NCBI GenBank assembly: GCA_977017575.1
Contig: CDRNVI010000151.1
Coordinates: 1-64,000 of the forward strand
Length of the DNA: 64,000 bases
Direction: 5' to 3'
DNA from: Paramoeba atlantica
Lineage: Eukaryota; Protista; Discosea
The translations under genes were made by a program, and so were the position numbers. Below, piece by piece: positions 1,306 to 30,000 of this stretch (the stretch's first letter is position 1; every line of letters begins with the position of its first letter). A model generated the notes under the pieces. The model had not been told where the DNA came from, searched no databases, and saw only the letters and a program-made list of their open reading frames with translations.

Positions 1306-4300
1306 TTATTTCTTTTTCAAAGTGATTTTCAAAAAATCCCAATAAAAAAGTGCAAATCGACAGAACTTTTCCTCAAAAATCATCTCATACCAATGTTCAC
1401 CAGATAAAAATATCTTTTGAAATTTTTTTTTTCTTTCATTTTCTTCTTCTTTCAACAAATTCATTTCTTCAATCAAAAACTCATTCTCTTCTTCTTCACT
1501 TTGAATAGCAACAAAATCACCACCACCACCACCACCACCACGACTGCCGCCACCACTACAAACAACATCACTTGTTGATCCTCTTCTTTTCTCTTCCCTC
1601 TCTCTTTCACCACAAACCAATTGTTGTTGTTGTTGTTTCACCATAACCACATTTCTCAAAAAATCTCCCATCACAAAATCTGGTTGAGAACTTATCCAAG
1701 CGGAAAAACTAACAATATGGGAAATATTTCGACAAAGAGTTTGAGGCATTTGACTTATATGACTTGGACAAACAGAATGAGGTAACCCACAAAACGGACA
1801 AATTTGAGACGAAGCACTCTTGTAATAAATTGCTGGGCAATGTTGTTCTGTTCAATGTTTCTTAAAATCCATACTCTTTCCTCCCATTTTACAAAAATGG
1901 CATTTGTTTTGAATCCATTTCTTATAGATCGAACATTGATTTATATCATCATAAAGAATTGTTGAATTGCAAGCAAAACATTGGTTGGACCATTTTTGGA
2001 GTTGATTTTGAATTTTTTGTTCAAAAAAAGTCTTTCATAAACAAGTCTTCAAAGGAAAGTTCAAATGATCATGAAGAAGAGAGCCGAGAGTATTCATTTT
2101 TGGAGGGTGTGCAGTGATGTTGTTGCTTTTTCCAATTTTCAATTGAAGTGATTGATAAAAGAGAAATGATGAATAGTAATCACGAAGAAGAGGTTCTTTG
2201 ATATCGTTCCATTTTGGTCGTCGAAAATTCTTCTTCAAAAAGAACCCTCCTCCTCCTCCTCTTCCTCCTCTCTCTTTCCCCACTTCCCCTCCTCCTCCAT
2301 GACAATCACTTCCAATTGCAACATCATGAGAGAACAAAGAAGAAGAAGAAGAAGAAGAAGAAGAAGAAGAAGAAGAAGAAGAAGAAGAAAAAAGAGAGGA
2401 AGGGAGGAGCAGTGGCACTATTGCTATTGACAATAATGAGGAAACAAGAGGAAAAAAAGAATTAGATGAAATCATTGATTCACCCTCTTCTTCCTCTTTC
2501 CTTTTTGAAGAAAGAAGAAATTTTGGAGGAGGAGGAGGAGTAAATAAAACAATTTTTCCTGGAGTTCGGTTCCCTCGAGTCACTGGGTCACAAAGTTGTA
2601 AAGTATCCAAAATTGAAAAGGGTACATCCATCATCAACAAATAAAAAAGAACTGGAAAGTCACATGCTTGACAAATTGTTGAGGTTCCAATGATAATAAA
2701 AGTACTTTCCACTGCTGCTGCTGTTGTTTCTTCTTTTCGTGGTGGTTGTGATGAAGAGGAAGAAAGAACTGATTTCATATTTTCCAAGTGTGTTGAATCA
2801 TTTCAATAGTCCAAAGAAAAGGGGATAAGAACAACATTCAAGTATCGTTTATCTGAGTATCGCACGGATAACTTATCAGATTTTTTAAAATAGCAATAAA
2901 CCTCAGAGACTTGACTTTTTGTACAACAATAAATCAAAACTTGACATTGAGCACGGGGGACTCATGTTAAAACATAAGTAAGAAGATTTTCTTTTGTTCC
3001 ATCCAAGCGTTCCTTGGAAGGATAAACAAACACATCATTTAGAAAATTCAAAAGAGAAGCAGAAAGATCAACAGATCCTTGAATTGCATGAAAAATATTC
3101 TTTCCTTTCCCACAATCAATTGCATTAGTCTCTTCTTCAAACATTGAAGAATCATAAGTTCCTGACATTTCGATAACTTTTTCTCCAATTTTAAGACAAG
3201 TGGCTCTCAAGTGAAGATAGCTCGAGCGATACGAAGGACCAGCAGACCATTGGAGATGAGCTTCATCAATAAAAATAAACGAAAAGATTTTTCTCAACAA
3301 ATCCAAAGAAGAAGAATTAGTCGCAACAGCAGCAGCAATACAGGGGGAGGCAGGATTTGTACTTGTTGTTCTGAGAGAAGAAGAAGCTTCCTCCTCTCCA
3401 AATTTCTCCTCCTCTTCCTCTTCCTCTCTTCTTCCTCTCCTTTGTGTTCTTTTTTGTTTTTGTTGTTGTTCATATTGTTGAAGACCCAACCACTCAATAA
3501 ATTCTTTCGTAGTCAAAACTTCAGGACATGCAATAAAAATATCAATTTCATCATCATCACCACCACCATACATCCTCTCACTTCTTTTTTTTTGTTGGTG
3601 TTGTTGTTGTTCAAAATATTGTGAACAAAGAATCGCACATCGAGTTGTTGGAAGAGATGAAAGAATCAAAAGAGATTGCAATTTAAAAGCAATTGTTGGA
3701 ACAACTAAAAGAAGAGGATGGTAATGGTGGTGGTGCAAAAAATTATCATCATCATCGTTATCATTATCAGATTGTTGTCGTTGTTGTTGTCGCTTCAAGT
3801 TTTCTCTTCTTCTTCTTCTTCTTTCTCTCATCTTTGCATGAGAAAAAGCAAAATACTCATAATAGATTGACTTCCCAAATCCACAAGGTCGAGAAATAAG
3901 AGTGTGGCGATTTAAAGAAATCACAATCAAATCTTCTTTTTGCTCTGGTTTCAATTCTTTCCATCCCTTTGCCTCAATAAATTCTTTGTGGTAATCTTCC
4001 ATATACCATAATAATGAGGTCATTGAAGAAGAAGAAGGTAATGGAGGTAGCAATAATGAGGAGGAGGAGGAAAGGGAAGAAGAGGGTGGTCCAGGGGAGG
4101 GGGAAGCAGCAGTTGGTAAAATTATTGTTGCCGCAGCATATAATGAATCTCTCCATTGAGTACAAAGCTCTTCCAAGAAATTCCATTTCAAATCCACATT
4201 TATCTCTTTTTTAAATCCATAAGAGGTTCGAAATGTTTGAAGAGAATGTCCATTTCCAGTTGCTAACATCGAAAAAATCGAGGATGAAGAAGAAGAAGAA

Positions 4301-7300
4301 GAAGAAGAGGAAGAAAATATTTCATCACCACCACCTCTTCCTCCTTCTCTTCTTCCAAAACAACTTTTTGGGGGGAAGTGTTGTTCACTCCCCCCCCCCC
4401 CACCACCACCACCACCACCACTACCACCATCACAAAAAACAACATCTTGGCAAGCTAACTTCATCTGCTGAAGTATTCAAAATCCAAGAACTTTATCAGA
4501 GGGTAATTTGCTTATCTGAAAAAGAGAACGAAGAATCGAATCAATTAATACTAGATCCAAAGTCCATGTCTCACACTTTGAAACTGCCTCACTCGTTAAA
4601 ATAAGATACTGTCAATCAATTGCAAAACAAAAAGAAGCCAACTTATCAAGAAAAGAGACATTGATTAATTGACTTGCTTTCTTCTTCTTAATATCTAAAA
4701 GAAATGCAATTGAGTAATTCGAAGTTGGTTTCCATTGACAAAATGAGTTCGGTGAATGAAGAGAGGAAAATTCACATTTTCGAGGTGTCAACACAGACGA
4801 AAAGTAGTGGTACAGAATGTATAAATGATAAAATTGCTTTCAATCATCTTCCTTAATGAACCCACTAAAACCACTACCACTACCACCATAACCACCACCA
4901 TGACCCCCACCACCACTGTTGCTGTTGCTGGAATCATCATCCAAAACAATTGATTTCCATGTAATTGGTTTCAGTGGATTGCTTGTGGAAGAAGAGGGAG
5001 CAGCAGCAGCAGCAATTACTGGACCATTCAGCATCCATACGTGGTTTTGGTACAGGGAATTCAACTTTAAAGATCGAAGAAACCATAAAAGAATATCTTT
5101 CAGTTTTTTAACAATGGCTGAAAGGGTTGATTGATAGATTTTCACCTCTTCCCCCGCTCCTCCTACTGTCTTTAATAAGAGTGGTGGTGATGGTGCCTGC
5201 TTTTGTGTTGATGTTGTTCCCTCTTCTCCCTCTTCCTCCTCCTCTGTTAATGTTAACGCTCCTCCTCCTCTTCCTCTTCCTCTTCCTCCTCCTCCTCCTC
5301 CTCCTCCTCCTGCCATTCTCATTACCACCTCCTCTCCTTCTTCTTCTCTTTCTATCTCCATCGCCATTCTCTCTTCTGTTGTTGGTGCTTTTGTTGCCAA
5401 TGTTCTCACTCCTCTTGTTGCTGTTCTCATCAGCCCCGCTCCTCTTTCCACTGCCATTCTTGTTGCTTCTTCTCCAATAGCAGTAGAACAAGGAGTTATT
5501 GAGGAAGAAGAAGAAACAGAAGAAAAAGAAACGACTGGAACCCACGAAATTGTCCAATGAAAAGAAGAAATATCTTTCCAAGAAATATGAAGAAGATTCT
5601 TTTCTTTTTCAACTTCATAAACAATATCTGGTTTTCTTTTTTTCTCTTGCTTCTTCTCTTCCTCTCCAAGTCGTTGACAAAAATAAACAATCTCATAACG
5701 ACAGTGCTGAATCATGTGACTTTGTATATTTTCATCAACATTAACATCAAAAGTATTAAGCGCAAGAGGGTACAGGTATAAATCCATTATTCGAAGTGCA
5801 TACAATATCTTCTTCAAATGATTCAATGGAAATGATAAAGAAGAAGAAGAAGAAGAAAAATGGTTTGACGAAAAAGAGGAAGAGGAGAATTCATCATCAT
5901 GAACAGAAGAACCATTTTGAAGAAACTTGGCAACAACATTGGATATCGAATGAGAAATAAACTTCAAGCCAATCAAGCAATGTGCATATGAAAAGATATT
6001 TAAAGCCAACCAAAGAATCGCTTCTCTTTTAGTTAAACCATCAAAACCACCACAACCACCACCACCACCACTCACCGGAACACCAACACAAGCCCTTACT
6101 ACATCAATTTCTATCATCTCAAATAAAGGAAGAAGATGCTGAGCATATTGTTTTGTTATCTGATCCGATTGTCCAACCTTTGAAAATACTGTTTCATTTG
6201 AAGATTGTCCCATTAAAAGATCCCAATTTCCTCCTTTTGTTCGAATTCAATAAATATCTCTTCGCATTGAAACTGAAAGCTCACCCAAAACAAATGCTTT
6301 TCCTTCAAAAAGAACTGAAATCAAAACCTCCAGTAATGGATTTTTATAAGGTGATGAATTTAACCAAGGTTCAATAATTCCACCACCACCACCACCAGAC
6401 CCAGACAACAACCCGCTGTGATCCTTATTCGTACTACCGCCACCACAACTCCTACTGCTGTTTCTGTTGCTGCCATTGCTGCTGCCACCACCACCACCAC
6501 CACCACCACCATCATTTCGATAATGGTGATGAGAAGAAAAAGGCATCATCTCATTGAAGCTCAAAAAAGGTTTGAGGAATGAAGGAATACAAGAACCAAC
6601 AGCTGAATTATCGAGAGCCTGAAGCCATTTCCATCAAGATTGACTTTCCTTTAATGAATAATCTGTAATTCCACCACCACCACCACCACCATTCTCAACA
6701 GAATTTGTTGTTCTCAATGCATATGGTAAAAACATGCATTTTTCTTTTTTTTTTTTCTTTTTGAGGCAGACTTTATTCAATTAGTAGTTCTTAATCTAAG
6801 CCATTTGAATTACATTAAATTATGTTTTTTTTTTTAACCTCTAACAAGAGGTGAAGTTTTAAACTTCAGCTTAGTTCAGTCGGTCTTTATGCTGAACTTT
6901 AGAACTTCTGCAAGTTCAGGCTGGAGGATGCACATCAGAAGGGAGAATAATCCAAAGCTCCTTCTAAGGGAATTTACCCTCAACTTTTTAGCAGACAGGG
7001 CTGAGATGTAACCTGTTCCGATTTTTACACTTTTTCAAAAGCTCCTCACTCCAATCAAATCACTCTACAGCACCAGAAAAATTTTCTATAATATCGAAAA
7101 ACTGGGATTTGAACTCGCCCCCCCGGGGTTGGACATAGTCGAATTTACGACTAAACTATGGGTGCCAACCCAAAAACATGCCTTTTTCACTCAGGTTCAT
7201 ATTCAACATCAAACAAAGAGAGAAAACAGAGTTGTTTCCTTCTCTCCTTCCTCCAGCAGCAGCAGCAGCAGTACCAGCAGCAGCAGCAGCAGTACCAGCA

Positions 7301-7341
7301 GCAGCAGCAGTACCAGCAGCAGCTTTCTCCTCCTCCGTTTC

Positions 7342-7373
<32 letters not shown>

Positions 7374-8166
7374 AGTTGTCAGTTGTTGTTCTTGTGGTTG
7401 TCTCAAGAAGAGAAGAACAACAACAAGAAGAAGGAGAATCTGACTCAAAAGAAGAAGAACAACGAGAATGAGGGAGAGAACAAGAACAACAACCATGACA
7501 AGAATTCTTAGAACAAGAACAAGAACAAGAAAACTGCTTCTGTTGCTGCTGCTGCTGCTCTCTTTTTGTCGATTTGAACAAAGAAGAGGAAGAAGAAGTT
7601 GGACACCCATCAAACAAAACACCTTTCCATTGATACACCACCACCACTTGACTGTTCAAAGAAGTGCAAGTACAACCATCCGCATGTTTTTTCTTTGATA
7701 AATCACTTTTTCTTTTACAAACAACACTATTACATTCAAAACAAAAAGAGAAACAAGATGTCCCTTGTGGAACAGCTCCTTCGAAGATAGGAAGTCTTCA
7801 ACAAGTTACATGCGAGAAAGATAAAAATTGAGAAACATAATCAGGTGAACACCTCTTCATCACCGAAGGATCGTAAGATTTTGTCTGACATTGTTTCAAG
7901 AAAGATTTCTTTATCCAATAATACTTTTTGGAAGTACTCATACTCTTTTTTTCAGCAGTTGGGATAAAACTATGACCACACACAAAAATCACATATTGAG
8001 TCTGTGAACCTCTAACAATCATAAAAGGAGGAGGAGAAGAATACTGTTGCTGCTGCTGCTGGGAAAACAGATCATCATTATGAGGTGGTGGAAACAATCG
8101 AGTTAAATCATGATCTTGTTTCACCAACTGCGAAAACACAAGGCGATCAAGCAAGGGAAACGTCAT
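1306..8166 (-). pseudogene. Telomere-linked tyrosine-recombinase / RecQ-like helicase fusion gene (~2138 aa reconstructed), interrupted by 10 TGA codons and a SINE-like insert
   Basis: Manual translation of the gaps joins ORFs 7798-8166, 7156-7659, 6247-6564, 4840-6213, 2962-4464, 2035-2787 and 1306-1749 in one frame ending at TAA 1306. YR motifs: PRKCEFSSL (Arg at 4780-4782) and GHSLQTFRTSY (His 4246, Tyr 4219). Helicase motifs: PCGFGKS, ACPEVL, FIDEAH, MSGT, VLIYC, GTSTICQACD. Cys-rich tail includes CPFCGLPHSVC. Confidence 0.85.
6745..7171 (-). mobile_element. tRNA-derived SINE-like insertion with A-rich tail and ~17-bp target-site duplication
   Basis: Plus-strand AAAAACATGC(A/C)TTTTTC at 6728-6744 and 7172-7188. 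Minus-strand head has A-box TAGTTTAGTCG (7158) and B-box GTTCAAATC (7114), 44 nt apart. AATAAA then an A-run at 6762-6745. Removing 444 bp rejoins LSEKG-MFL-PYALR in frame. Confidence 0.8.
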
Positions 8167-10129: not shown

Positions 10130-11349
10130 TTAAAAAAAAAGAATATTTTTATTATAAGAAATATGATAAGAGTGAGGAGGCCACATAATATTATCCGGGG
10201 AAGAGAATTGCTGGTCATAATTTTTAAAAAAAATAACAGTGTATTGTTCCCCACAAAAACTTTCCATTGCAATTTTTCGATGTCACAAACATCCATCAAA
10301 AACAATTATTGTTCCTGGAATAATTGGAATTCGAATTGTATATGCTCCTGTTGGGTCTTCAAATTCAAAAAAACTCTCATCAACAAATGTTCCTAAAAAA
10401 ATAACAATTTGAAATGTAATATCATGTTCATCAGAGTGCCATTTGACTAATTGGTCATTTGATGTCATTAAAGAAACATAGATTACAAATTCCCCAGAAG
10501 CAAAGCGATCATCGAGAAGAGAATATAGGTATTTCCTTTAAAGCCATAATTGTTTTTTCCATTGAGGAATTTTTCGTTCGAGTGGATTATTAGCAACTCC
10601 AAAATGGCGGATAAAATTGTGGGGTTTTTCAAAACCTAATCCAAAATTAGGGGAAAACAATTAAAGGAGGTGGGTGGGTGGGTGTAAGACGAACAAACGA
10701 AAAAGAAACAAAAATAAGGTTAGAGAAAAAAGATAAACGAAAAAAACAAAGAAAAAAAAGATAAAAAATTAAAGAAAAAAAAATTAAAGAAAAAACCTGT
10801 TGCCCCAATTGCATTAACAGTATATCCAATCATAATTGTTCCTTTAAGATCAAAATTTTTTGAAGTTTGTTTTTGTGAAAAACAACAAAAATTCTTCAAA
10901 AAGAAAAAGAAGATGCTCAAATATTAGGAAAGAACTGGTGGAAATGTTAGAAGTGGTTGAGGAAGGTTTGTGTTTGTAAAGATATGATATTTGTGAAGTG
11001 AAAAAAAGGGAAGAATTTTGTGTTCTTTTCCAGGTTTGTTGAGAGGGTTTAAAAGGCTGCTTCTGCTGCTGCTGCTGAGAACAGAGGAGGAAAAATAATA
11101 ATTTTTGAAAAACTCTGGAATAGAAACTGAAAAAGGTGGTAATATCGTAAACTTTTCCTCCTCCTTTCTCAAAGGTGGTAAAGAAGAAAAGGAAGGGGGG
11201 TTGCATTGAAATGCTGTTAAGTAAAAATTGTCCTCATTCATCGCTTGTACTTTTCGCTTTTTTGCTTCTCTTTCTTCTCTTTTTTGTAAACACCAGTATG
11301 TTCGGCAGTCTTTTTGATGAAGAGAGGGAAAAAGGACTTTATGGGACAT
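10130..11349 (-). pseudogene. Decayed 2OG-Fe(II) oxygenase-like gene, probably with an intron
   Basis: One frame reads KWHSDEHDITFQIVIFLGTF...IIPGTIIVFDGCL*HRKIAMESFCGEQYTVIFFK, giving an HxD motif and a distal His in a DSBH-like pattern. In-frame TGA at 10283 and TAA stops upstream; probable intron ~10635-10795. The 5' boundary is uncertain. Confidence 0.55.
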
Positions 11350-12800: not shown

Positions 12801-14660
12801 AGTAAATCACAAGGGAATAAGACGATATAATTTTTCAATGGATAAAGAACATTTTCTGAAAGAAAAAATATTAAAACAAAAAGTTATTTAAATATTATTT
12901 TAAAAAATATCAGAAAAAAGAAACTAAATCCCTAACCCATCACAACATCATTGTGCTTTATCTGAGAGAAAAATAGGATTCTTTGAATACAGTAAATCAC
13001 AAGGAATAAGATGATGTAATTTTCAATGATAAAAAACACTCTCTGAAGAAAAAAACAATAAAAAAAAAGTAATTAGTTACTATTTAAAAAAATACCAGAA
13101 AAAAGAAACTGAACCTCTCACATCACATCAAGTGCTTTATCTGAGAAAAATAGACTTCTTTGGAGAGAGTAAATCACAAAGAATAAGACAATGTAATTTT
13201 CAATGATAAAGAATATTCTCTGAAGGAAAAAACAATAAAAAAAAGTAATTAGTTATTGTTTAAAAAAATGTCAGAAAAAAAGAAATTGAACCCCTCACAT
13301 CACATCAGGTGCTTATCTGAGAGAAAAATAAACTTCTTTGGATACAGTAAATCACAAGGAATAAGACAATGTTATTTTCAATGATAAAGAACACTCTCTG
13401 AAAGAAAAAAACATTAAAACTTTAATTATTTAAATATTGTTTAAAAAAATATCAGAAAAAAGAAATTGAACCCCTCACATCACATCACATTGTGTTTTAT
13501 CTGAGAGAAAAATAGGATTCTTTGGATACAGTAAATCACAAGGAATAAGACGATGTAATTTTCAATGATAAAAAACACTCTCTGAAGAAAAAAACAATAA
13601 AAAAAAATAATTAGTTACTATTTAAAAAAATACCGAAAAAAAGAAACTGAACCCCTCACATCACATCACATTGTACTTTATCTGAGAAAAATAGGCTTCT
13701 TTGGAGAGAGTAAATCACAGGGAATAAGACGATAGTATTTTCAATGATAAAGAACAGTTTCTGAAGGAAAAAACAATAAAAAAAAGTAATTAGTTATTGT
13801 TTAAAAAAATATTGAAAAAAAGAAACTGAACCCCTCACATCACATCAAGTGCTTTATCTGAGAAAAATAGGCTTCTTTGGATACAGTAAATCATAGGGAA
13901 TAAGACGATATCATTTTCAATGATAAAGAACAGTTTCTGAAGGAAAAAATAATAAAAAAAAGTAATTAGTTACTATTTAAAAAAATACTAAAAAAAAGAA
14001 ACTGAACCCCTCACATCACATCAGGTGCTTATCTGAGAAAAATAGGCTTCTTTGGAGAGAGTAAATCACAGGAAATAAGATGATAGTATTTTCAATGATA
14101 AAGAACAGTTTCTAAAGAAAAAAACAATAAAAAAAAGTAATTAGTTATTGTTTAAAAAAATATCGAAAAAAAAAAACTGAACCTCACATCACATCAAGTG
14201 TTTTATTTGAGAAAAATAGGCTTCTTTGGATACAGTAAATCACAAGGAATAAGACGATATTATTTTCAATAATAAAGAATAGTTTCTGAAGGAAAAAACA
14301 ATAAAAAAAAGTAATTAGTTATTGTTTAAAAAAATACCGAAAAAAAAAAACTAAACCCTTCATATCACATCAGGTGCTTTATCTGAGAAAAATAGGCTTC
14401 TTTGGATACAATAAATCACAAGGAATAAGACGATATTATTTTCAATGATAAAGAACAGTTTCTGAAGGAAAAAACATTAAAACTTTAATTATTTAAATAT
14501 TGTTTAAAAAAATATTGGAAAAAAGAAACTGAACCTCTAACCCATCACATCACATTGTGCTTTATCTGAGAGAAAAATAGAATTCTTTGGATACAATAAA
14601 TCACAGAGAATAAGACGATGTTATTTTCAATGATAAAGAACAGTTTCTAAAAAAAAAAAC
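12801..14660. repeat. Tandem array of ~178-bp units (~10.5 copies)
   Basis: Recurrent anchor (GT)AAATCACA(A/G)GG(A)AATAAG about every 175-190 bp; each unit also has TTTTCAATGATAAAGAAC, CACATCACATC and TTATCTGAGAAAAATAGG. Confidence 0.95.
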
Positions 14661-14661
14661 A

Positions 14662-16257
14662 ATTAAAATAAAAAAAAATAAAACAAAAAAAATTCCGAAT
14701 ATCAACAAAAAGATTAAAACTCAAAAAGAAACAACAAAAAACAAACTTTCATATTTTTAAACTTTCAAAACCCTGAAATAAAAAAGAAATAAAAAAAAAC
14801 AAAAAGAAAAAAAAAAGAAGAAAATGAGAGAAAAAGAAAAAAAGAAATCAAAAAAGAAATCAAAAAACCATTGAAAAAAAAGAAATCCTGTTCCCACTCA
14901 ACACAAAAGAAAATGAATCCCTTTTAATTTTTTTTATTGTTCATTCTGAGAATAAAAAAAATTAGTTTTTCATTTTTCTAAATCTTTTCAAAAAAGAAAA
15001 AGAAAAAGAGAAAAAGAAAAAAGAGAAAAAGAAAAAAGAAAAAAAGAAAAAAGAGAAAAAGAAAAAAGGAAAAAGAAAAAAAAAAACAATTTTGTGTGAA
15101 AAAAAGTAAAAAAGAAAAAGAGATAAAGGAAAAAGAAGAAAAAAGAAACAAAAAAGAAAAAGAGAAAAAGAAAAAAAGAAACAAGAAAAAGAAGAGGAAA
15201 AAAGAAAAGAAAGAAAACCTCAAAGAATTGGATCACCAGATAAATTTTGTAAATTCTCTTATCTTTCTCACTTTGAGAAAAATAGATTGGTTTTTCGTTT
15301 CTCTTTCTTAATATAAAAGTGATACATTGAAAAAACCAAAAATCTCTTGATTTCTAAAAGTCTATTTTTCTCATCTTTCAAAAAACAAAAACCAAACACA
15401 AAAATCAAACAAAAACAAAAAACAAAAAAGAAAAACTTTTTTGCCGAAAAACCGATTTTTATTTTGGGTGCGATTTTTTTTCTTGAAATTTGATAAAGTG
15501 AAAAAGAATTCAAATGTTCTTGTTTTTTCTTAGTTGTTCAAGCTTCCATCAAGATAGGACCAATACAAATTCAATTCTTTTTCTTTTTTTCTTCTTTAAT
15601 CTTATTTTTGGTTTGTATTTGGATCTTTTCAATCAATTTTGGTCATACAATCCTTTTTCTTTGTTTTTTTTTGTTTTTTTCTCTTTTTTGTTGAATCTTT
15701 CTCTTTCTCTTTCTTTTTCTTTTTTTCTTTCTTTCTCACAAACAAAAAAGAAAAAAAAAACTGTTCAAAACAAAAAACCAAAAAAAAAACCAAAAAAAGA
15801 AAAAGAAAATGGCTGATGTGGCAACATTTGATTGGGAATTGGATTTTTTTTTCTTTTTCAGAAAAGAAAGTGGCAGGTGAGAAAAAAAAAGAAAAACAGA
15901 AAGAGAAAAGAAAGAAATTGAAAGAAAAGAAGAGTTGAAAGGTTTGAAAAGATACATGATAGATTGTTTGATTTACCAATGAACTTTTTTATTCCATATT
16001 TCAAGTAAATGTTTTAGTTTGTTATTCTTTTTTTTTTTCTTTATTCACAAACTATTAAAAACAACACCACTGGATCAATCATTTCACTTTTCCACACACA
16101 ATCAAAAGAAAGAATTGAGAAAATCAAAGAAAAACAAAAGGTTTCTTTTTTAGCACATCTTATGCTTCGACGTTTTTCATCTCTTTCGAATAGAATCATC
16201 ACCTTAATCGATTCGATTCGTAAATCTTTCGAAAAAATTCGTTAGTTTTTTGCAATG
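14662..16257. repeat. ~1.6-kb segmental duplication, copy 1
   Basis: Co-linear with 17218-18803 from AATTAAAATAAAA...TTCCGAATATCAAC to TTTTTTGCAATG. Confidence 0.92.
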
Positions 16258-16261
16258 AAAA

Positions 16262-17217
16262 GGGAATAAGATGATGTAATTTTCAATGATAAAGAACATT
16301 CTCTGAAGGAAAAAACAATAAAAAAAAGTAATTAGTTATTGTTTAAAAAAATGTCGGAAAAAAAGAAATTGAACCCCTCACATCACATCAGGTGCTTATC
16401 TGAGAAAAATAGGATTCTTTGGAGAGAGTAAATCACAGGGAATAAGACGATGTGATTTTCAATGATAAAGAACAGTTTCTGAAGGAAAAAACAATAAAAA
16501 AAAGTAATTAGTTATTATTTAAAAAAATATTGAAAAAAAGAAACTGAACCCCTCACATCACATCAAGTGCTTTATCTGAGAAAAATAGACTTCTTTGGAT
16601 ACAATAAATCACAAGAAATAAGATGATATCATTTTCAATAATAAAGAATAGTTTCTGAAGGAAAAAACAATAAAAAAAAGTAATTAATTATTGTTTAAAA
16701 AAATACCCGAAAAAAGAAACTGAACCCCTCATATCACATCATTGTGCTTTATTTGAGAAAAATAGGCTTCTTTGGATACAGTAAATCACAAGAAATAAGA
16801 CGATATTATTTTCAATGATAAAGAACAGTTTCTGAAGGAAAAAACAATAAAACTTTAATTATTTAAATATTGTTTAGAAAAATATCAGAAAAAAAAAACT
16901 GAACCCCTCACATCACATCATTGTGTTTTATCTGAGAGAAAAATAGATTTCTTTGGATACAGTAAATCACAAGGAATAAGATGATATAATTTTCAATGAT
17001 AAAGAACAGTTTCTGAAGGAAAAAACATTAAAACTTTAATTATTTAAATATTGTTTAAAAAAATGTTGAAAAAAAGAAACTGAACCTCTAACCCATCACA
17101 TCACATCATTGTGCTTTATCTGAGAGAAAAATAGGATTCTTTGGATACAGTAAATCACAGGGAATAAGATGATGTCATTTTCAATGATAAAAAACACTCT
17201 CTGAAGAAAAAAAACAA
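16262..17217. repeat. Second ~178-bp tandem array (~5.5 copies)
   Basis: Same unit as 12801-14660. Confidence 0.95.
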
Positions 17218-18803
17218 TTAAAATAAAAAAAAATAAAACAAAAAAAATTCCGAATATCAACAAAAAGATTAAAACTCAAAAAGAAACAACAAAAAACAAA
17301 CTTTCATATTTTTAAGCTTTCAAAACCCTGAAATAAAAAAGAAATAAAAAAAAACAAAAAGAAAAAAAAAAGAAGAAAATGAGAGAAAAAGAAAAAAAGA
17401 AATCAAAAAAGAAATCAAAAAACCATTGAAAAAAAAGAAATCCTGTTCCCACTCAACACAAAAGAAAATGAATCCCTTTTGATTTTTTTTATTGTTCATT
17501 CTGAGAATAAAAAGAATTAGTTTTTTATTTTTCTAAATCTTTTCAAAAAAGAAAAAGAAAAAGAGAAAAAAAAAAAAGAGAAAAAGAAAAAAGAGAAAAA
17601 GAAAAAAACCAAAAGAAAAAAAAAAACAATTTTGTGTGAAAAAAAATAAAAAAGAAAAAGAGATGAAGGAAAAAGAAGAAAAAAGAAACGAAAAAGAAAA
17701 AGAGAAAAAGAAAAAAAGAAACAAGAAAAAGAAGAGGAAAAAAGAAAACCTCAAAGAATTGAATCACCAGATAAACCTTGTGAATTCTCTTATCTTTCTC
17801 ACTTTAAGAAAAATAGATTGGTTTTTCATTTCTCTTTCTTAATATAAAAGTGATACATTGAAAAAACCAAAAATTTCTTGATTTCTAAAAGTCTATTTTT
17901 CTCATCTTTCAAAAAACAAAAACCAAACACAAAAATCAAACAAAAACAAAAAACAAAAAAGAAAAATTTTTTGCTGAAAAACTGATTTTTATTTTGGGTG
18001 TGATTTTTTTTCTTGAAATTTGGCAAGGAGGTGAAAAAGAATTCAAATGTTCTTGTTTTTTCTTAGTTGTTCAAGCTTCCATCAAGATAGGACCAATACA
18101 AATTCAATTCTTTTTCTTTTTTTCTTCTTTAATCTTATTTTTGGTTTGCATTTGGATTTTTTCAATCAATTTTGGTCATACAATCCTTTTTCTTTGTTTT
18201 TTTTTGTTTTTTTCTCTTTTTTGTTGAATCTTTCTCTTTCTCTTTCTTTTTCTTTTTTTCTTTCTTTCTCACAAACAAAAAAGAAAAAAAAAAACTGTTT
18301 GAAACAAAAAACCAAAAAAAAACCAAAAAAAAACCAAAAAAAAACCAAAAAAAATGGATAATGTGGCAACATTTGATTGGAAATTGGATTTTTTTTTTCT
18401 TTTTCAGAAAAGAAAGTGGCGGGTGAGAAAAAAACAGAAAAACAGAAAGAGAAAAGAAAGAAATTGAAAGAAAAGAAGAGTTGAAAGGTTTGGAAAGATA
18501 CATAATAGATTGTTTGATTTACCAATGAACTTTTTTATTCCATATTTTAAGTGAATGTTTTAGTTTGTTATTCTTTTTTTTTTTCTTTATTCACAAACTA
18601 TTAAAAACAACACCATCAAATCAATCATTTCACTTTTCTATACACAATCAAAAGAAAGAATTGAGAAAATCAAAGAAAAATGAAAGGTTTCTTTTTTAGC
18701 ACACCTTATGCTTTGATGTTTTTCATCTCTTTCAAATAGAATCATTACCTTAATCGATTCGATTCGTAAATCTTTCGAAAAAATTTGTTAGTTTTTTGCA
18801 ATG
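17218..18803. repeat. ~1.6-kb segmental duplication, copy 2
   Basis: Co-linear with 14662-16257. Confidence 0.92.
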
Positions 18804-18805
18804 TA

Positions 18806-19020
18806 TAGGGTGCCACTTTAAAGTTCTATCATTATATGTGAATTTCATACATAATACCTCTTCGTAAACTGCCTATAACTTTTTGTGACATATTCGGATT
18901 TTTAAAAAAAATATGCCATTAGGAAGACAAAAATGAGGCGCATCTTTCTACTAGTCTTGATTTTCCAAATTGTGAAAAAAAGTAGTTCAAAATGAAGTAA
19001 TTAGGCCCTAAACCCTAATA
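18806..19020. repeat. ~214-bp subtelomeric direct repeat, copy B
   Basis: Near-identical to 1067-1281; abuts a truncated gypsy RT. Confidence 0.95.
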
Positions 19021-20460
19021 GAGAAAATTTTCAAACCTCTGATCCAAAAAATCAAATCAACAATCATAGGGAGCTGGTAGTTTGGAGCTTCTGATTTTAC
19101 ATTCACCCCTCTTAGGTCCATACAAAGCTGAATATCATCTTCCTTCTTGCCACCTGAAACCTTGGGAGCTGCTACTAGAGGGATGTTTCAGAGATTTTGC
19201 ACTGAGGATATATCCTCTAGAGGAACTATCCACCCTTTTTCCAACCATTCAGTAACTCTCTGTTGAACTTTGCCACTTAATCTTTCTGAAATCAGGTACT
19301 GTTGCATAAAAACCAGCTTTGGATCAAGCAATGAAATTGAAAAATGCAAATTCCTAATATTATAACAAGTCCCATTAGACAATCTTTGATTCTCTTCAAG
19401 AACTTTTTTAATCCTTTCTATTATTTTCTCAACTTCTTTCTCAGGCAGGTGTGTCTCTTCAGATGGCCCACTCCATCCCTCTTTGTCCACTAAGTTAGTT
19501 TTATAGGACAACTTCTTCTTTTCTGGGAACACTGGTGGAATTCTTTCAATTTCAACACCAAGTTTTGCTTCATCAGCCACACTCAAAAGTACTCAATCTT
19601 TTCTTAAACCAAGTAAAGTCCAAATTAAAATCTCAGTTTAGCCTTGGATTGTTGAAACTTTAACTTTCTTTGCTGTGTCTGTTTCTTGAACATGTCCAGA
19701 AATTCCTTAAACTCAAAAATTTCTCTTCACTAAATTTCCTTCTAAATAGTCAAAAACAGAAGGGTTAGCAAGTGTTGCACTTGCTCCTGAATCAAAGATC
19801 ACCTACACTTCCATGTTATTCCTTCCAAGAGAGATTGAAATCTTAGAGAGCCCATCCATATCTTCTTCTGTCCTTAAACCAAAAAATCTTTCTTTAGTTA
19901 AAGTTAAATAAGCTTCCTCATCCTTAAAATCAGATGTTAAAACATCATTTCCAGGGACCTCTAGGTTTGATTCCTCTTCTAGCTTTCTTTTTTGGACATC
20001 CATTTGCATAGTGACCCTTTTCCTGATAAGAGAAACATCTTATCTTGGCCAAATCATGTCCTCTCCTCTCTTGAGGCTCATTTCTGTGCAATTGCTGTTA
20101 TAGACCTTTACCTTCTGTTCCACCCCCTCAAGCCCAACACTCTTTCTTAAAATGGCCAGATTTCCCACAATTCTAGTAGTTTGTTGGTCTCCTTGGCTCT
20201 ACAGGACCAGGGGCATGAAAATGGTTAAGTAGGGCTGAACCCTCCCTTGCAGCTCCAATATCAATCAAATTGGTTATAGAGATTCATATCTTAAAAAGAT
20301 AGTCACTTCTACACAATAATTCCCAGAAGGGTTGATAACCTGGGAAAACTGCTTTTTCCAAAAGCTCCTTCACCTCTCAAGAACAAGGATCTATCCCTGA
20401 AGCTGCTACCAGCAGATTAAACTAATACTCAAATATGTTGAGTTTCTCACTTGGCTTTTG
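19021..20460 (-). mobile_element. Decayed Ty3/gypsy-like LTR retrotransposon fragment (gag Zn knuckles, protease, start of RT)
   Basis: Knuckles NCGKSGHFKKEC and CFSYQEKGHYANGC; protease VIFDSGAS; RT start EWLEKGWIVP...L*NIPLVAAPK...IQLCMDLRGVN. Multiple TAA, TAG and TGA stops; cut off at 19021. Confidence 0.85.
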
Positions 20461-22749
20461 CTGGAGACTTTTCAAAGCTTTCAAAATCCACCACATCTGA
20501 TTTTTGAGAAAACGCGAATTTTAAAAATAAAGTTCAGGCCCATTTTTTTTGGTAGCAATCCAGTGTTTAAAGGTGTTGTAAGCAACTTTTTGATGGTTGT
20601 TAAGGTGGTAATTTTGTGTTTTTTTTTCAGATATCAGATGCACAAACCCAGCACCCATAATTCAAAATCTATTTTCATTTTTCAAAGACTGTGTTTCCAA
20701 ATGTAACCCAACTTGGTTAGCTCAAAACTTGGTGTATTTTCCCATCCTAAATAAAAGAGAAGAGAAAGCCCAATATCTTTTTTGTCACGATGAAGAACTG
20801 TCCCACAAGCAATTGAGAGCCAAAATTCTTCAATCAAGCAAAAATCTTTGTTGAAAGAGTCTTCGAGAAGAAGTTCAGGTCCAAACAGAGTGAGCAGTTT
20901 GTTTAGACATTTGAGAGAAAAACAAAAAACAAGAAGAAAAAAAAAAAAAAAAAAACAAAGAACTTGAACTAAATCATTTTGGCTGTATTTTTCGAATAAA
21001 AAAAAAGAAAAAAAGTAATCTGAAAAGAATCCAAGACGAAAATTGCTAATTTTTTTGCTTTTTTTTCTTTCAAATTTTTGATTCTTTTTTCAAAATGCTT
21101 GCCAGATTCAATCTTAAAAGAAAAAAATGAATTCAATCACAAAAAAAGAAAAGAAGGAGATTAAAAATGGAATTCTTGCTCTGTCAACCAATTCCCTATG
21201 ATTCTTTGTTTTCTTCTTCATGGACATTATCACCAAAAAACCCTTTTCCTCTCTCGATGTTATTGTTTCCTCCTGTTTGTTTTTCAGAGCCATCTAAGAA
21301 TAGTTATTCTACTCTCTCTCTCCTCCTTCACCTTTATTATTTGATCGTTTTTGTTTTTTGACTGTATGAGAACTTGTAAAAACAAATAAGAGTTTGGTGT
21401 CTTGGAAAGTGCTTGAAGAGAAGGTTGTGTTTCGGTTTGATCATCTTGTTTTTCTTTTTCTTTCTTTTTTTTCTTTCATTTTTCTCCCCTTTTTTTCTTT
21501 CTTTTTTTTTCTTCCTTTTTATTCTTCCTTTTTATTCTCTCTTTTTTTCTCCTTTTTTCTCCTTCCTCTTTTTTCTTTTCTTTTTTTTTTTATTATTCTT
21601 ATCATTTTTAAAAATATCTTTTTTGAATCCACACAATACAGATTTCTAAAATTGTTGGAAGAATGAGTTGAAAGAAAGCAAGTGGTTCACATGGACTCTC
21701 AAAACCAATGGATTATTCAAAACTGAAACAACCACATTATTTTAACAAGGAAACCAGGAAAAAGCACTATTGTTGTTGAGAACTTATTTTAAAACCAAAC
21801 CAGCAACAGTTTCTCCCCAAAATCCATCGCTGGCTTTGGAGCAGGAAGTTTTGGAAATGGAATTTCAAACTCTGGTGATTTCAAGTGTATTGGCTCCCCA
21901 GACAAAGGATCTAAGACTCACTGAAATATCATCACATCATTTGGATTTTTTAGTAACCCATATCATTCATCATCATATTCACAAACTGTGCTTGTTTCAA
22001 ATCATCAGATTTCTCAAGGTTTTGAAAGTCTATTTATTAAATTTTAAGAAATTATAATCCTTCAAAACACACACAAAAAAAAAATGAATTAACCTTTTCG
22101 AATCGCTTTCTTCACAACTCGCTTCCCAATGGGCAGACAATGAACGAGTTCTTGAATCAGTCTTTTTGAAATGCTGGACTTGAACTTTTCAAAAGTTCAA
22201 GTTCAGTGTTTCAAAAGGTTTATCCTCTTTAATCCGTGTTCCTTCATACCTTCGAAGAGATAAACCACTTTAAAGTTTGTAATTTCTTCTGTTTTCCTCT
22301 TGATTTGAGATGTAAAAGCTCTCCTTTCCCATTGTTTTTCATGAATAACAGAAGTGTTGATGATTGGAAGTTGTTTTATTTTTGTTCGGAAGAAAAATTG
22401 AAAAATTGTCATTTAAAAAGAAAGTTAAACCAGGTTGTTTTGTCCTTTTGACTTTTTTAATCTTTTTGATCTCTTTCCAAAAATCTTTTTGGTGTTTCTG
22501 TGAGATTCGGGTGTGCCCATTTTCAAAAAATTGCCCGATCTATTTATTCTTAGACTTTAGAATATGGAGAAAAAAGTAGAACCAAAATAGAAAAGAACAT
22601 CTTCTCTTTCAAGGGGAGATATTGGCAGTTTGACCAACACTTTTTTAACACTTTTCAATATCTCTCCCATAAAAGTTGTTTTTTTGGTTCTTTAAAAATA
22701 CATTATTTCAAAGAACATCAAAAAACAAATCAAAATCAAAAAACAAACC

Positions 22750-25689: not shown

Positions 25690-26990
25690 CAGTTCTCAGG
25701 GTACATGGGTGAATTTTATCTCATTAAAGCACATTGTTAACTTATAGATTTCACAAAGTAATTCATTTAAAGTATACTTTTTAATAGCATGGGTTTTGGG
25801 TGCAGCCTTAATAAGAATCATACAATCCTCAACAACTTCAATCTTATTTGTCATTGATCTGGCACATTGCATTCCTTTCAAGCAGCTTGTAAACTCACCA
25901 ATATTGTTGGACCCAAGAGGAATGGTTTTGAAACCATCATTTTTTTCATTTTCTTTACTGAAAACTGTAAAACCTGCACCCCCCAGATGAGGGTTTGTAT
26001 GTCCTGAACCATTATAAAACACTTGAAAACCTTTAAATTTAAAACTTTCCTTCTCTTTAGTTCTTTTTTTGGTTTGAGCCCTTGGAGGCTGAGGGAGGAT
26101 TTTGTTCTTTCTTAGGATTTTTTTAAAAATTTCAGTAGCATACTGGGGTGATTTTGATCCTTCTACACACACTGTGAGCCACAAACTCAACAGAGCAACA
26201 CTCACCACAGAGGTTTCTTGCCTGGTAAGAAACTTTGAGACAAGCCCACATACATTCTTAGTTTCTTGCCAGCTGGGTACATTCAACAAAATACATTTCC
26301 TTCCTATTGCTTGAAGAAGATCCTCAGCTACAGAACATTCCTCCAGTAGATAAATTCACAACTCCTTTTCTTGGTGGCAGAGCCAATGACTTGAGTCTTA
26401 GTTTGTGAAATGGGCTAACTTGTCTCTTGTAGGCAGCCCTCTTATTATGAATTTAAACAAATTCCTCTTGAGTTGAGGTCTAATTGCATGTGCCAAGTTG
26501 TACACCACACACTCAGCTCTTCCTTCCCCCACATACAGATCCTTGATTTCAATAAGGATCATACAAGACATATTGGAATATGCAATTCAAGTGGCCTGGC
26601 CAAAAACAACTTTGGCTAATTAGAAAACACAGAGGAAACAACAAAACAACATCAAATCAAGAAGCATCTTCAAGAGCCAAAACACTCTCACAACCTAACA
26701 TTTTCTGAATTTCTCAGTTGTTTTCCTTTGCAATTCTATTGGAATTTTTTTGTTATGAGACTTGTTTAGTGTCCCCCTACTTTGGAGATCAAACACCAAA
26801 AAGCAGTCTCTTTGATTGAGTTTGGGGTTAAAGTTATCTTTGAGATGTTTCCTCCAAATTGAGGTAGTGGATGTTAATAATTTTTGTTCAGTAGTTTTTG
26901 TGAGGAGTTTTGTGCAAAAAAAGCACACCTTAGGGGTTATAAATACCTTACTACTTATGGACCAAATATCCTATTGCTGTCAGGGAAATG
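25690..26990 (-). mobile_element. 5'-truncated non-LTR retrotransposon relic with zf-RVT-like and C-terminal RNase H domains
   Basis: FKFIIRGLPTRDKLAHF..DSSHWLCHQEKE..YLLEECSVA resembles zf-RVT. It is followed in frame by VFYNGSGHTNPHLGGAG..SNNIGEF..VVEDC..IKFTHVP*E, an RNase HI pattern with mutated acidic residues. Confidence 0.8.
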
Positions 26991-27050
26991 AAAAAAAGAG
27001 GATATAATAATAAAAATTTAAAAGTAAAAAAAATTAAATAGTTTAAAATA

Positions 27051-30000
27051 TTATTTTAAAAGAAGAATTGCAAGATCAATATTTGATTTTTCTTTTTCCA
27101 ATAAAATTTGAATAATTTGTTCATATCCTTTTTGAGCAGCAACAGAAAGAGGGGTTTCTCCATCCTTTCATTCACAAAAAGAAAATAAGAAAATATTATT
27201 CAAAAAAAGAAATAAAAAAATAAACCAATCTTGAAAGATTAGCATTTGCTCCTCCTTTTTCCAATAAAATTTTCACAATTTGTTCATATCCATTTTCAGC
27301 AGCAGTAAAAAGAGGAGTTGTTCCATTCTTTTAATAAAAAAAAATAGAAAATTGAATAAATAAAATAAAAATAAAATAATAATAATCACCAAATAACCTT
27401 CTCTGCAAGATCAACATTTGCTCCTTTTTCTAATAAAAGGTGAACAATTTGTTCATGTCCAATGTCAGTAGCAATAGAAAGAGGAGTTATTCCATCCTTA
27501 AAATAAGAGAAAAGGAGAAAAATGAAATTGAGGAAAAAAAATATATCAAAAAGAAAAAAACAAATCAACACTTTTAAAATTTAAAAACAAGAAAAAGAAC
27601 CTGATCTGGAAGATCAACATTTGCTCCATTTTTCAATAAAATTTGAACAACTTGTTCATGTCCTTCTTGAGCAGCAATAAAAAGAGGAGTTACTCCATCC
27701 TTTACATGAATAAAAAAAAATAGAAAAATGAGAAAGTGAAAAAGAAAAAGAAAAAGAAAAAGAATCAAATCAACAGAAAAACCTGATCTGGAAGATCAAC
27801 ATTTGCTCCTTTTTCCAATAAAAGGTGAACAATTTGTTTATATCCCTCTTGAGCAGCAATAAAAAGAGGAGTTACTCCATCCTTTACATGAATAAAAAAA
27901 AATAGAAAAATGAAAAAGTGAAAAAGAAAAAGAAAAAGAAAAGAAAAAAAATCAAATTAACAGAAGAACCTGATCTGCAAGATCAACACTTGGTTTTCCT
28001 TTTTCCAATAAAAGTTGAACAATTTGTTTATATCCTTTTTGAGCAGCAATAAAAAGAGGAGTTACTCCATCCTTGAAATTAAAATAATGAAAAAGGTATT
28101 TTTCAAAAAAGTTGTATCAAATAAATTTCAGATATTTTGAATGTTTAAACTCTTTCAGATTCAAAAATATTTTTCAAAAAAGAAAAAATAAAAATAAAAA
28201 AGAACCTCTCTTTGAGAATTAACATTTGGGTTTCCTTTTTCCAATAAAAGTTGAACAATTTGTTCATGCCCTTTTTCAGCAGCAATATAAAGAGGAGTTG
28301 TTCCATCCTTTACATTAAAAAAAAATAGAAAATGAAAAAAAAAAAAAAGAAAATCAACAAAAAAAAAATAAAGAAACCTCTTTTGCAAGGTTAACTTGTA
28401 TTCTCCCTTTTTCCAACAAAAGTTGAACAATTTGTTCATGTCCTCTTTCAGCAGCAATATAAAGAGGAGTCCTTCCCTCCTTTAAAAAAAAAAAAAATAG
28501 AAAAGTAAGAACATGAAAAATAGAAAAAGAAATCAATTAAAATATCATAAAAAGAACCTTCTCAGCAAGATCAACATTTGCTCCTTTTTCCAATAAAAGT
28601 TGAACAATTTGTTCATGTCCTTTTTCAGCAGCAATATAAAGAGGAGTTGTTCCATCCTTTTGATATAAAAAAAAGAAAAATGAGAAAGGAACTTTTTTTG
28701 AAGTTATGTTAAATAAATTTTCAAATATTTTGAGTGTTTGGTTTTTCAATTAGAAAAACAAAAAACCTTCTTTCAAAAATAAGAAAAAAAGAAATAGAAA
28801 AATAGGAAAAGAACCTTTCTTTGAGAATTAACATTTGCTTTTCCTTTTTCTAATAAAAGTTGAACAATTTGATGATGTCCTCTAAAAGCAGCAGTATCAA
28901 GTGGGGTTTGTCCATATCCCTTGGGAATAAAAAATAAAAAGAAGAATGGAAAATAAATAAATAGTTTTTTTTGTTTTAGAAAAAAAAGTTCAATCCAGTT
29001 TTCATCACAAAAGTGAAAAAGATAAAAAAAATCAAAGCTTTCAACAAATTCAAAATAAAAATAAGAGAGAACCTGATCAGCAAGATTAGCATTTGCTCCT
29101 CCCTTTTCCAATAAAATTTGAACAATTTGTTCATATCCTTTTTGAGCAGCAAAAAAGAGTGGAGTTGCTCCATCCTTTAAAAAAAAAAATATCATGACAA
29201 AAATATCATAACAAAATATGTCAAAATAATTTAATAATTCAACCTTTCTTTGAGAATTGGCATTTGCTCCTCTATTCAATAACATTTCAACAATTTGTGG
29301 ATTTCCACCAAGAGAAGCAACACCAAGTGGAGTTTGTCCAAATTTCTGAAAGAAAAAGAGGGAAAGAATGAAAAAGAATTTTTTTTTGTTTTGAGTTCTA
29401 TCTATTTTAAAATTACAAAATAAAGTAAAAAGAAAAAGAACTGATTCCGCAAGATGAACATTTGCTCCTCCATTCAATAAAAGTTGAACAATTTGTTCAT
29501 GGCCATTTTTAATAGCAACATAAAGGGGAGTGAATGCAAACTTTGGAGAAAAAAATTACAACCAAATGAGAAAAAGAAAGTGAGAAAAAAATATCAATTA
29601 CAACAAAGAAATATCAAATAATATTTCATCACAAGGAACAATACTCTCTTTTCAAATGTTAAGAAAAAAGAAAACCTTTCTTTGAAAATTCACATTTGGG
29701 TTTCCTTTTTCCAATAAAATTTGAACAATTTGTTCATGTCCTTCTTGAGCAGCAAAAAAAAGAGGAGTTCTTCCATCCTTTGCACAAGAAAACATAGAAA
29801 AATGAGAAACTGAAAAAAAAAAAAAAAAGAAAAAAAGAAGAAAAAGAAACAATCAACAAAATAACCTGAGTTGCAAGATCAATATTTGGATTTCCTTTTT
29901 CCAATAAAATTTGAACAATTTGTTCATGTCCATTGTGAGCAGCAATCAAAAGAGGAGTGACACCACCCTTTGGTCATAAAAAAATAGAAAATGAAAAAAT

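Follow-up and report, generated by a model that had tools for sequence, protein, structure and literature searches.

The 64,000-nt stretch of Paramoeba atlantica DNA analysed here (contig CDRNVI010000151.1, positions 1 to 64,000; hereafter the window) begins with a telomere, next to which lies a large decayed gene coding for a putative tyrosine recombinase (YR) fused to a RecQ-like helicase and forming part of what is probably a telomere-associated mobile element. The telomere is composed of ca. 104 copies (103.7 by tandem-repeat count) of (CCCTAAA)n, located on the plus strand at 1–726, and is followed by an AT-rich stretch (727–1059) to which the DNA of other copies of the element gives only weak 70-bp AT-rich matches. 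The YR-RecQ gene occupies positions 1306–8166 of the minus strand and is transcribed toward the telomere, its stop codon lying 579 bp from the telomere repeat. It is intronless and pseudogenised, with ten TGA codons, an inserted short interspersed element (SINE), and damaged catalytic residues.

The reading frame extends from the ATG at 8166 to the TAA at 1306 over 2,287 codons without a frameshift, and the remaining two minus-strand frames contain 116 and 148 stops over the same interval, which confirms the proposal of the sequence-only reading that seven separate open reading frame (ORF) fragments constitute a single gene. Without a 444-bp insert the gene codes for 2,138 amino acids (aa). 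The protein length of ca. 2140 aa and the distance of ca. 580 bp from the telomere given in that reading hold, as do the locations of all the motifs it quoted: PRKCEF at 4785, ILQQM at 4476, GNGH..Y at 4257–4219, PCGFGKS at 3888, DEAH at 3267, MSGT at 3168, LIYC at 2937, and CPFCG at 1800, all on the minus strand. About 39% of the frame is of low complexity. Outside codons ca. 329–476 it is interrupted ten times by TGA (at 7800, 6636, 6249, 4842, 4614, 4479, 2964, 2805, 2037, and 1854), and never by TAA or TAG.

Four segments can be distinguished in the encoded protein, all on the minus strand. The N-terminal one (7680–7800) is a Cys/His segment resembling by eye a Zn finger and situated at the position of OrsD/C2H2 in the telomere-linked TLH helicases; a DUF3505-like family had been suggested for this end, and no match to PF12013 (OrsD/DUF3505) was obtained there with Pfam or with a TLH profile. 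The second is the putative catalytic domain of a YR (4219–4850), corresponding to the "TLH domain" and recognised by its motifs, the YR fold having been modelled for its fungal counterpart. It comprises R1129 (4782), a Lys run at ca. 4690, the second-Arg position R1233 (4470; Gln in the window copy), H1307 (4248), and Y1316 (4221), so that the R, K, R, H/W, Y order of catalytic residues in tyrosine recombinases is present when the second Arg is counted from another copy of the gene, L001. The His of the H-x2-R box is missing from the window protein and fungal TLH alike. The third segment is a superfamily 2 (SF2) RecQ-like helicase (2574–3888) with motifs I–VI in order; motif VI is damaged in the window copy, and comparison with the copy L004 points to an original Q-x2-G-R-x2-R. 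The last segment (1786–2001) contains two Zn motifs, L-x2-W-x3-C-x2-C and C-x2-C-G-x-P-x3-C, common to fungal TLH.

In library searches the pieces of the window protein between stops were queried separately, while motif scripts used the natural frame with X at the stops. The helicase matched Pfam DEAD with an E-value of 3.6e-4, below the Pfam cut-off, and NCBIfam TIGR00614 (RecQ) with an E-value of 0.09; its best PDB sequence match was RECQ5 (E 0.63), spanning DEAH and the RecQ aromatic loop. The profile check of the RecQ assignment thus gave consistent RecQ/DEAD matches, all of them weak. No YR or DUF3505 match to the window protein was found in Pfam, NCBIfam, or PHROGs, no homologues of a 504-aa piece in two word-based searches, and no relatives of the protein, the GNGH motif, the oxygenase described below, or the TLH domain in viral contigs. 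The YR call for the window protein rests on motifs, since profile searches gave no link to TLH or YR and the model of the family's own domain failed; we consider it highly probable that the protein contains a true YR.

The TLH proteins have been described as carrying a domain of ca. 250 aa and of unknown function directly before the helicase (10.1101/2024.02.27.582403). With a sequence motif as a lead, 114 metagenomic fungal TLH-like loci were gathered, 38 of them with intronless ORFs of 1,400–2,077 aa. OrsD/DUF3505, DEAD, and Helicase_C are present in all three ORFs scanned with Pfam, and the database relatives of these ORFs come from Alternaria, Pyrenophora, Aspergillus, and Hortaea. Seven of the 114 loci carry TTAGGG arrays at the end of the contig or close to it, in every case on the coding strand, which is also the arrangement in the window. 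The loci match the published description of TLH, the domain of ca. 250 aa before the helicase included. Neither these loci nor the window contained anything of human appearance. Three TLH-domain matches from a search of prokaryotic genomes (L124–L126) are located on short contigs of bacterial metagenome-assembled genomes and are probably eukaryotic (fungal) contamination.

In 33 sequences of the fungal TLH domain R69, K104, K113, H236, and Y245 are invariant, and R192 is found in 32. An AlphaFold2 model of the domain, with a predicted local distance difference test score (pLDDT) of 71.6 and a predicted template modelling score of 0.71, retrieved with Foldseek exclusively YRs or topoisomerases IB as the first 27 PDB matches (XerA, XerH, Cre, integrases), with XerA the best (probability 1.00, E 0.011) and XerH at a probability of 0.99; the E-values are just 0.01–0.08 and the template modelling (TM) score ca. 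0.35. In a search of viral structures with the same domain the named top matches were recombinases and integrases. No YR match for fungal TLH was found in Pfam, NCBIfam, or PHROGs, nor did a profile search of the PDB with that domain yield one. Despite the modest E-values, the consistency of the ranks and the invariant catalytic set make the modelling a strong argument for a YR-like fold, with conserved catalytic residues, in the TLH domain of fungi.

The window protein and TLH can be compared by the spacing of these residues. GH-x8-Y and R-x2-E-x7-N occur once each in the window protein, 177 aa apart (165–247 in TLH), and 123 aa separate GH-x8-Y from Walker A (113–125 in TLH); the two patterns occurred jointly in none of 20,000 shuffles, a figure that flatters the match, because the patterns were chosen after inspection of the sequence. 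The two C-terminal Zn motifs are present in 37 and 27 of 38 TLH loci, with shuffle frequencies of 0.001 and 0.0003, and are spaced by 67 aa in the window versus 51–59 aa in fungal TLH. Unsupervised MAFFT alignment placed H, P, R, E, N, and the second R of the window protein and TLH in register in one run, and in another aligned W, R, GH, Y, and W, with seven matched positions, a number reached by two of 120 shuffles.

The resemblance to TLH (S. pombe tlh1, M. oryzae TLH1, Fusarium TLHcr, and Monosiga TLH, with PF12013 and RecQ) includes the order of an N-terminal Zn segment, a domain of ca. 250 aa, RecQ, and C-terminal Zn motifs, as well as a single long ORF directed toward the telomere with tandem repeats upstream, a sharp centromere-side boundary starting with CCTA, and telomere-like stubs between units (PMC1635262; 10.1101/2024.02.27.582403). 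The window protein differs in its extreme divergence, with no significant profile match, no PF12013, and its low-complexity content, and in its length of 2,138 aa versus ca. 1,550–1,700 aa; its element carries an oxygenase-like gene, and its host, with TTTAGGG telomeres, is apparently neither a fungus nor a choanoflagellate. It should be added that the TLH of U. maydis lacks C2H2 motifs (10.1101/2024.02.27.582403). Homology of the window protein with TLH is in our opinion probable, and the region with R..E, K, R, and GH-x8-Y would then be the TLH domain. The YR-RecQ fusion, which the sequence-only reading placed in a non-fungal protist, is not peculiar to that protist; it appears to be the TLH architecture itself. 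The non-fungal protist as host fits the TTTAGGG telomeres, T-rich introns, and family-C G protein-coupled receptor, TIG, and Thg1 genes of the host, features that would suit an amoebozoan-like protist.

An exhaustive phmmer search retrieved six fragments at 77–92% identity and two distant relatives. The close fragments are located on three contigs of ENA ERZ24900291 and represent three further copies of ca. 95% identity, all on contigs ending inside the YR-RecQ gene; since ERZ24900291 also carries the host genes of the window at 99% identity, these copies belong to the window's own organism. The distant relatives, L002 (ERZ27256803) and L006 (JGI 3300045502), come from other samples and have each a stop or a frameshift, L006 with a TGA where Arg would fit. 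Judging from such sequences, the YR-RecQ lineage extends beyond the window's organism, and a 37%-identical relative from a different sample has kept GNGH-x8-Y at the equivalent place.

Among the copies, 276 of the 298 polarised differences are C>T or G>A, the C-to-T hits affecting 56% of CpG sites versus 12–13% in other contexts, and the ratio of nonsynonymous to synonymous rates across the four copies is 1.0. At seven of the eight comparable TGA sites another copy has CGA or CAA, the exception being 6636, and each of the four copies carries stops of its own, with TGA, TAG, TAA, and frameshifts in the others. As the host genes use the standard code, this bias, rate ratio, and distribution of stops indicate that all four copies are pseudogenes undergoing neutral decay by cytosine deamination, presumably caused by cytosine methylation, and that the ten TGAs arose mostly by CGA-to-TGA decay and not by recoding. 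The second-Arg codon in ILQQM, CAG (Gln) in the window and TGG in L003, derives from the CGG (Arg) present in L001, so that the second Arg was real. The window copy, proposed to be possibly dead on account of this Gln, is indeed dead and can fulfil no function itself; the Gln is not the sole reason, however, the ten TGAs and the SINE being others.

The 444-bp insert (6738–7181, minus strand) is SINE-like, with an A-rich tail, a target duplication of at least 10 bp, and, by eye, a tRNA-like head with A and B boxes, for which neither ARAGORN nor Rfam gave a match. It is bounded by two copies of GCATGTTTTT (minus-strand 7181 and 6737) and is missing at the equivalent site from the three other copies. 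Members of the same family are found at four other sites (L001 3661–4083, L003 2044–2471, L004 11158–11607, and L007 13955–14326), each with its own target duplication; the family is ca. 430 bp long, its target duplications are ca. 10–19 bp, and one copy is 5'-truncated. An intron as the nature of the insert was rejected in view of its absence from other copies, the target duplication, and mobility elsewhere.

The observed/expected ratio of CpG is low over positions 1–32000 of the window (0–0.06 at 24–30 kb) versus ca. 0.6 in host genes, and the repeats of the window display C>T decay also in non-CpG contexts, with almost no other mutation type. This suggests an all-context methylation or a process similar to repeat-induced point mutation acting on the repeats of this protist.

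The element is far larger than the YR-RecQ gene: it measures ca. 15–18 kb and extends from about 1060/1071 to 18810. From copy to copy, homology continues well beyond the ATG on its upstream side, across a second gene and 176-bp arrays, and halts at 18809–18810; the window, ctg3824l, and ctg2854l all start CCTATACATTG, which begins with CCTA, at the same nucleotide, next to three unrelated flanks. In the window this sharp 5' end lies at 18799–18810 on the minus strand. The same kind of end is found in one fungal lineage, four copies of which have an abrupt start at (C)CTA next to differing flanks (CCTA background ca. 0.001 per base), no clear element end having been seen in other fungal locus pairs; in M. 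oryzae the divergence of TLH regions sets in at the first or the second C of CCTAACC, and tandem repeats lie upstream of the gene (PMC1635262). These ends are an argument at the DNA level, independent of the protein motifs, for placing the window gene with TLH.

Two 233-bp direct repeats of 93.6% identity accompany the element, copy 1 just 3' of the gene (1060–1292) and copy 2 in the flank of the 5' end (18799–19031). Each comprises, in the direction of the telomere, a two-unit telomere-like stub and then a CCTA-initiated segment, and in copy 1 there is a second CCTA junction at about 1070. A similar 11-bp core is present at 1060–1070 and 18799–18809, itself within the 233-bp repeat, and no terminal inverted repeats were found between the presumed element ends. 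The stub (1262–1282, and about 19001–19021) has the form ATTAGG, an 8-bp spacer, and CCTAAT, that is, an inverted repeat with 6-bp arms; judged by sequence, it has the geometry of YR sites and may be due to chance. The stub of the outer repeat abuts a truncated, decayed Ty3/gypsy-like pol, part of a heavily decayed gag-protease-reverse transcriptase fragment recognised by eye (19032–20500, minus strand) and cut within the reverse transcriptase (RT) at the stub, which is possibly an old healed chromosome end.

The 176-bp tandem arrays (12801–14668 and 16263–17223), positioned analogously to the helicase-associated repeats of M. oryzae, lie partly within a 2.55-kb tandem duplication (13719–16264 / 16261–18810) missing in ctg3824l. 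The second gene (10130–11349, minus strand), revealed by a script assuming C or G at C/T and G/A columns, has two exons separated by one GT-AG intron at about 10796–10637 and is broken in the window copy. Its exon 2, open as it stands in L001 (4612–5142) and L004 (4574–4912), contains the motifs of 2-oxoglutarate (2OG)-Fe(II) oxygenases, namely H-x-D, a distal His, and R/Q-Y. The gene matches PHROG 274, annotated "DNA endonuclease V", with an E-value of 2.8e-5 and PHROG 81, "2OG-Fe(II) oxygenase", with an E-value of 0.02, and no relatives of it were found in the phage collection. It is an oxygenase-like cargo gene that possibly codes for a base-modifying counter-defence enzyme, a TET/JBP-like role being a guess.

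Beyond the element, a fragment of an RNase H-bearing retroelement is located at 25691–26616 (minus strand); it shares 87% identity with a longer ORF for RT and RNase H (L003 1–1697), by which the L003 copy of the element is interrupted. An intron-rich ankyrin-repeat gene with near-zero CpG occupies 27050–32200 (minus strand), and its 76%-identical paralog (L008 17400–18550) adjoins another element copy, which suggests that the ankyrin-repeat genes are a subtelomeric gene family.

The window thus appears to contain a dead copy of a TLH-kind telomere-associated DNA element mobilised by its own tyrosine recombinase, a reading to which we assign a probability of about two in three (0.68). The telomere-associated mobile element put forward in the sequence-only reading is supported by the multicopy state, the sharp CCTA end with at least three flanks, and the gene directed toward the telomere, from which we infer mobility. 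The sharp end, the presence of several copies, the domains encoded, and the decay are established; the chemistry, the intermediate, and the role of the helicase we infer as follows. The YR would cut and rejoin one pair of strands at the CCTA end via a 3'-phosphotyrosine intermediate, and this end would be joined to a target site, either within the subtelomeric DNA or at a stub of telomere repeats. The donor form would probably be circular or head-to-tail, in the way proposed for Cryptons (PMC3212892). The fused 3'-5' RecQ motor would then unwind or branch-migrate from the joint, and the new end would receive a copy of the element, up to or including the telomere. Insertion beside the remnant of an earlier copy would have left the 233-bp direct repeats as its trace. 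Subsequently the host would have silenced the element, most likely by cytosine methylation leading to the CGA-to-TGA stops, and the SINE would have been inserted later.

Several results weigh against this reading, besides the modest Foldseek E-values and the retrospective choice of motif patterns already mentioned. The AlphaFold2 model of the family's own YR piece (L003) had a pLDDT of 41 and no YR match in Foldseek, so the structural check of this region did not confirm a YR; taken together, the findings support the joining of YR and RecQ in one polypeptide. Comparisons of TLH with the window protein by hidden Markov models and hhalign remained at noise level, the helicase included, and an ordered-block test was no better than shuffles. 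The fetched fungal family is equated with Tlh1/TLH1 by domain content and position, not by the sequences of the latter. Finally, none of the available copies is intact, they provide no empty site, circle, or second 3' end, and telomeric placement of the other copies is lacking.

The rival that survives best is a host gene for telomere rescue, residing in a subtelomeric duplicon and spread solely by ectopic homologous recombination like yeast Y', with the YR domesticated or structural and without a part in mobilisation. In S. pombe, telomere crisis induces the tlh genes, which assist recovery (10.1101/2024.02.27.582403), and a circle integrated by homology could have given rise to the 233-bp direct repeats. 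Such a gene would hardly be expected to have a 5' end exact to the base next to flanks that are unrelated, catalytic residues invariant in fungi, no purifying selection on any of the four copies, and C>T decay as heavy as in the neighbouring transposons, and we regard this explanation as unlikely.

Quite unlikely, too, is that the YR is not an integrase but a protelomerase- or Xer-like resolvase that acts at the TAGG/CCTA inverted site on an episome or on chromosome ends that are fused or replicated. TelK and topoisomerase IB do occur among the fold matches, at ranks 37 and 21, respectively, but both Xer and Cre come far ahead of TelK; the stub at 1262–1282 could provide the inverted site, but its arms are only 6 bp long. 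The combination of one specific end with a telomere boundary recalls bacterial telomeric transposons (10.1101/2024.11.13.623437), while the assembly ends in telomerase repeats with no hairpin end visible.

It is very improbable that the element is an unrelated helicase-bearing one, AcademH- or KolobokH-like for example, with coincidental YR-like motifs. Every profile and structure test on the window protein itself was negative, and Academ and KolobokH transposons are known to carry RecQ or SF2 helicases (PMC3627910; PMC10799480), yet coincidence would have to account for the order and spacing of the motifs, the two C-terminal Zn motifs of TLH type, and the His and Tyr kept in the 37%-identical relative, and neither a terminal inverted repeat nor a DDE transposase match in the frame pieces scanned was found. 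A functional gene with TGA recoded or read through, which the exclusive occurrence of TGA among the ten internal stops might suggest, was rejected as next to impossible, the orthologous codons being CGA or CAA, the other copies having TGA, TAG, TAA, and frameshifts of their own, the standard-code host ORFs of 350–670 codons being free of internal TGA, able to terminate in TGA, and using TGG (with 14 occurrences in GH76), and the SINE by itself breaking the frame with TAA and TAG stops.

A TLH-kind element moved by a YR has counterparts among known mobile elements. AcademH and KolobokH use a DDE transposase with terminal inverted repeats and target duplications; the window element is set apart from them, as no such repeats were found between its presumed ends and no DDE transposase family was matched in its frame pieces and upstream ORFs scanned, the likeness lying in the transposon-encoded RecQ or SF2 helicase (PMC3627910, PMC10799480). 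Cryptons share with it the YR as sole recombinase and, judging from the single 3' end available, the lack of terminal inverted repeats and a short terminal motif, CryptonS having TATGG termini (PMC3212892) and the window element TATAGG/TGTAGG. They differ in that the window YR is fused to a helicase (none is mentioned for Cryptons in PMC3212892) within a telomere-associated element of 15–18 kb, and the Crypton YR domains GCR1_C and DUF3504 gave no Pfam match in the window protein or fungal TLH. Starships are likewise large eukaryotic elements with cargo, mobilised by a YR; their captain is a stand-alone first gene, whereas the window YR is internal, fused to RecQ, and telomeric, and Pfam detected no DUF3435 in the window protein or fungal TLH. 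Yeast Y' has in common a helicase gene in terminal tandem arrays. Nimaviruses show YR-linked insertion into telomere repeats (PMC10871703), but no viral genes were found in the window element. The bacterial telomeric transposons also have one specific end and the telomere as the other boundary, but are Tn7-like or TnsBC (DDE) (10.1101/2024.11.13.623437).

Taken singly, TLH genes, transposons with a YR, and transposons with a helicase are nothing new; the link between TLH and a recombinase is without report in the searchable literature: no publication linking TLH or RecQ helicases to a tyrosine recombinase was found, with Repbase and subscription journals outside the coverage. The comparison suggests that the recombinase is present in the TLH genes of fungi too, and that these are transposon-like elements and not ordinary repair genes. 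The odds seem evenly balanced that the TLH genes found in fungi, in choanoflagellates, and in this protist drive an ancient class of DNA transposons of eukaryotes that has gone unrecognised, in which a YR-RecQ protein joins a CCTA end to chromosome ends and rebuilds subtelomeres, with this lineage adding a 2OG-Fe(II) oxygenase as a possible counter-defence acting on methylated bases.

For more than 20 years TLH genes have been on record from the majority of chromosome ends in many fungi, S. pombe and crop pathogens among them. If the TLH domain is an active tyrosine recombinase, TLH regions would be self-mobile telomeric elements, which would account for the abruptness of their inner boundary and for their tandem arrays, their silencing, and their patchy distribution. 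The window copy appears to carry the TLH family beyond opisthokonts and shows that C-to-T decay strongly affects the repeats of its host in all sequence contexts; its main value is as a pointer to a testable recombinase function for the whole TLH family.

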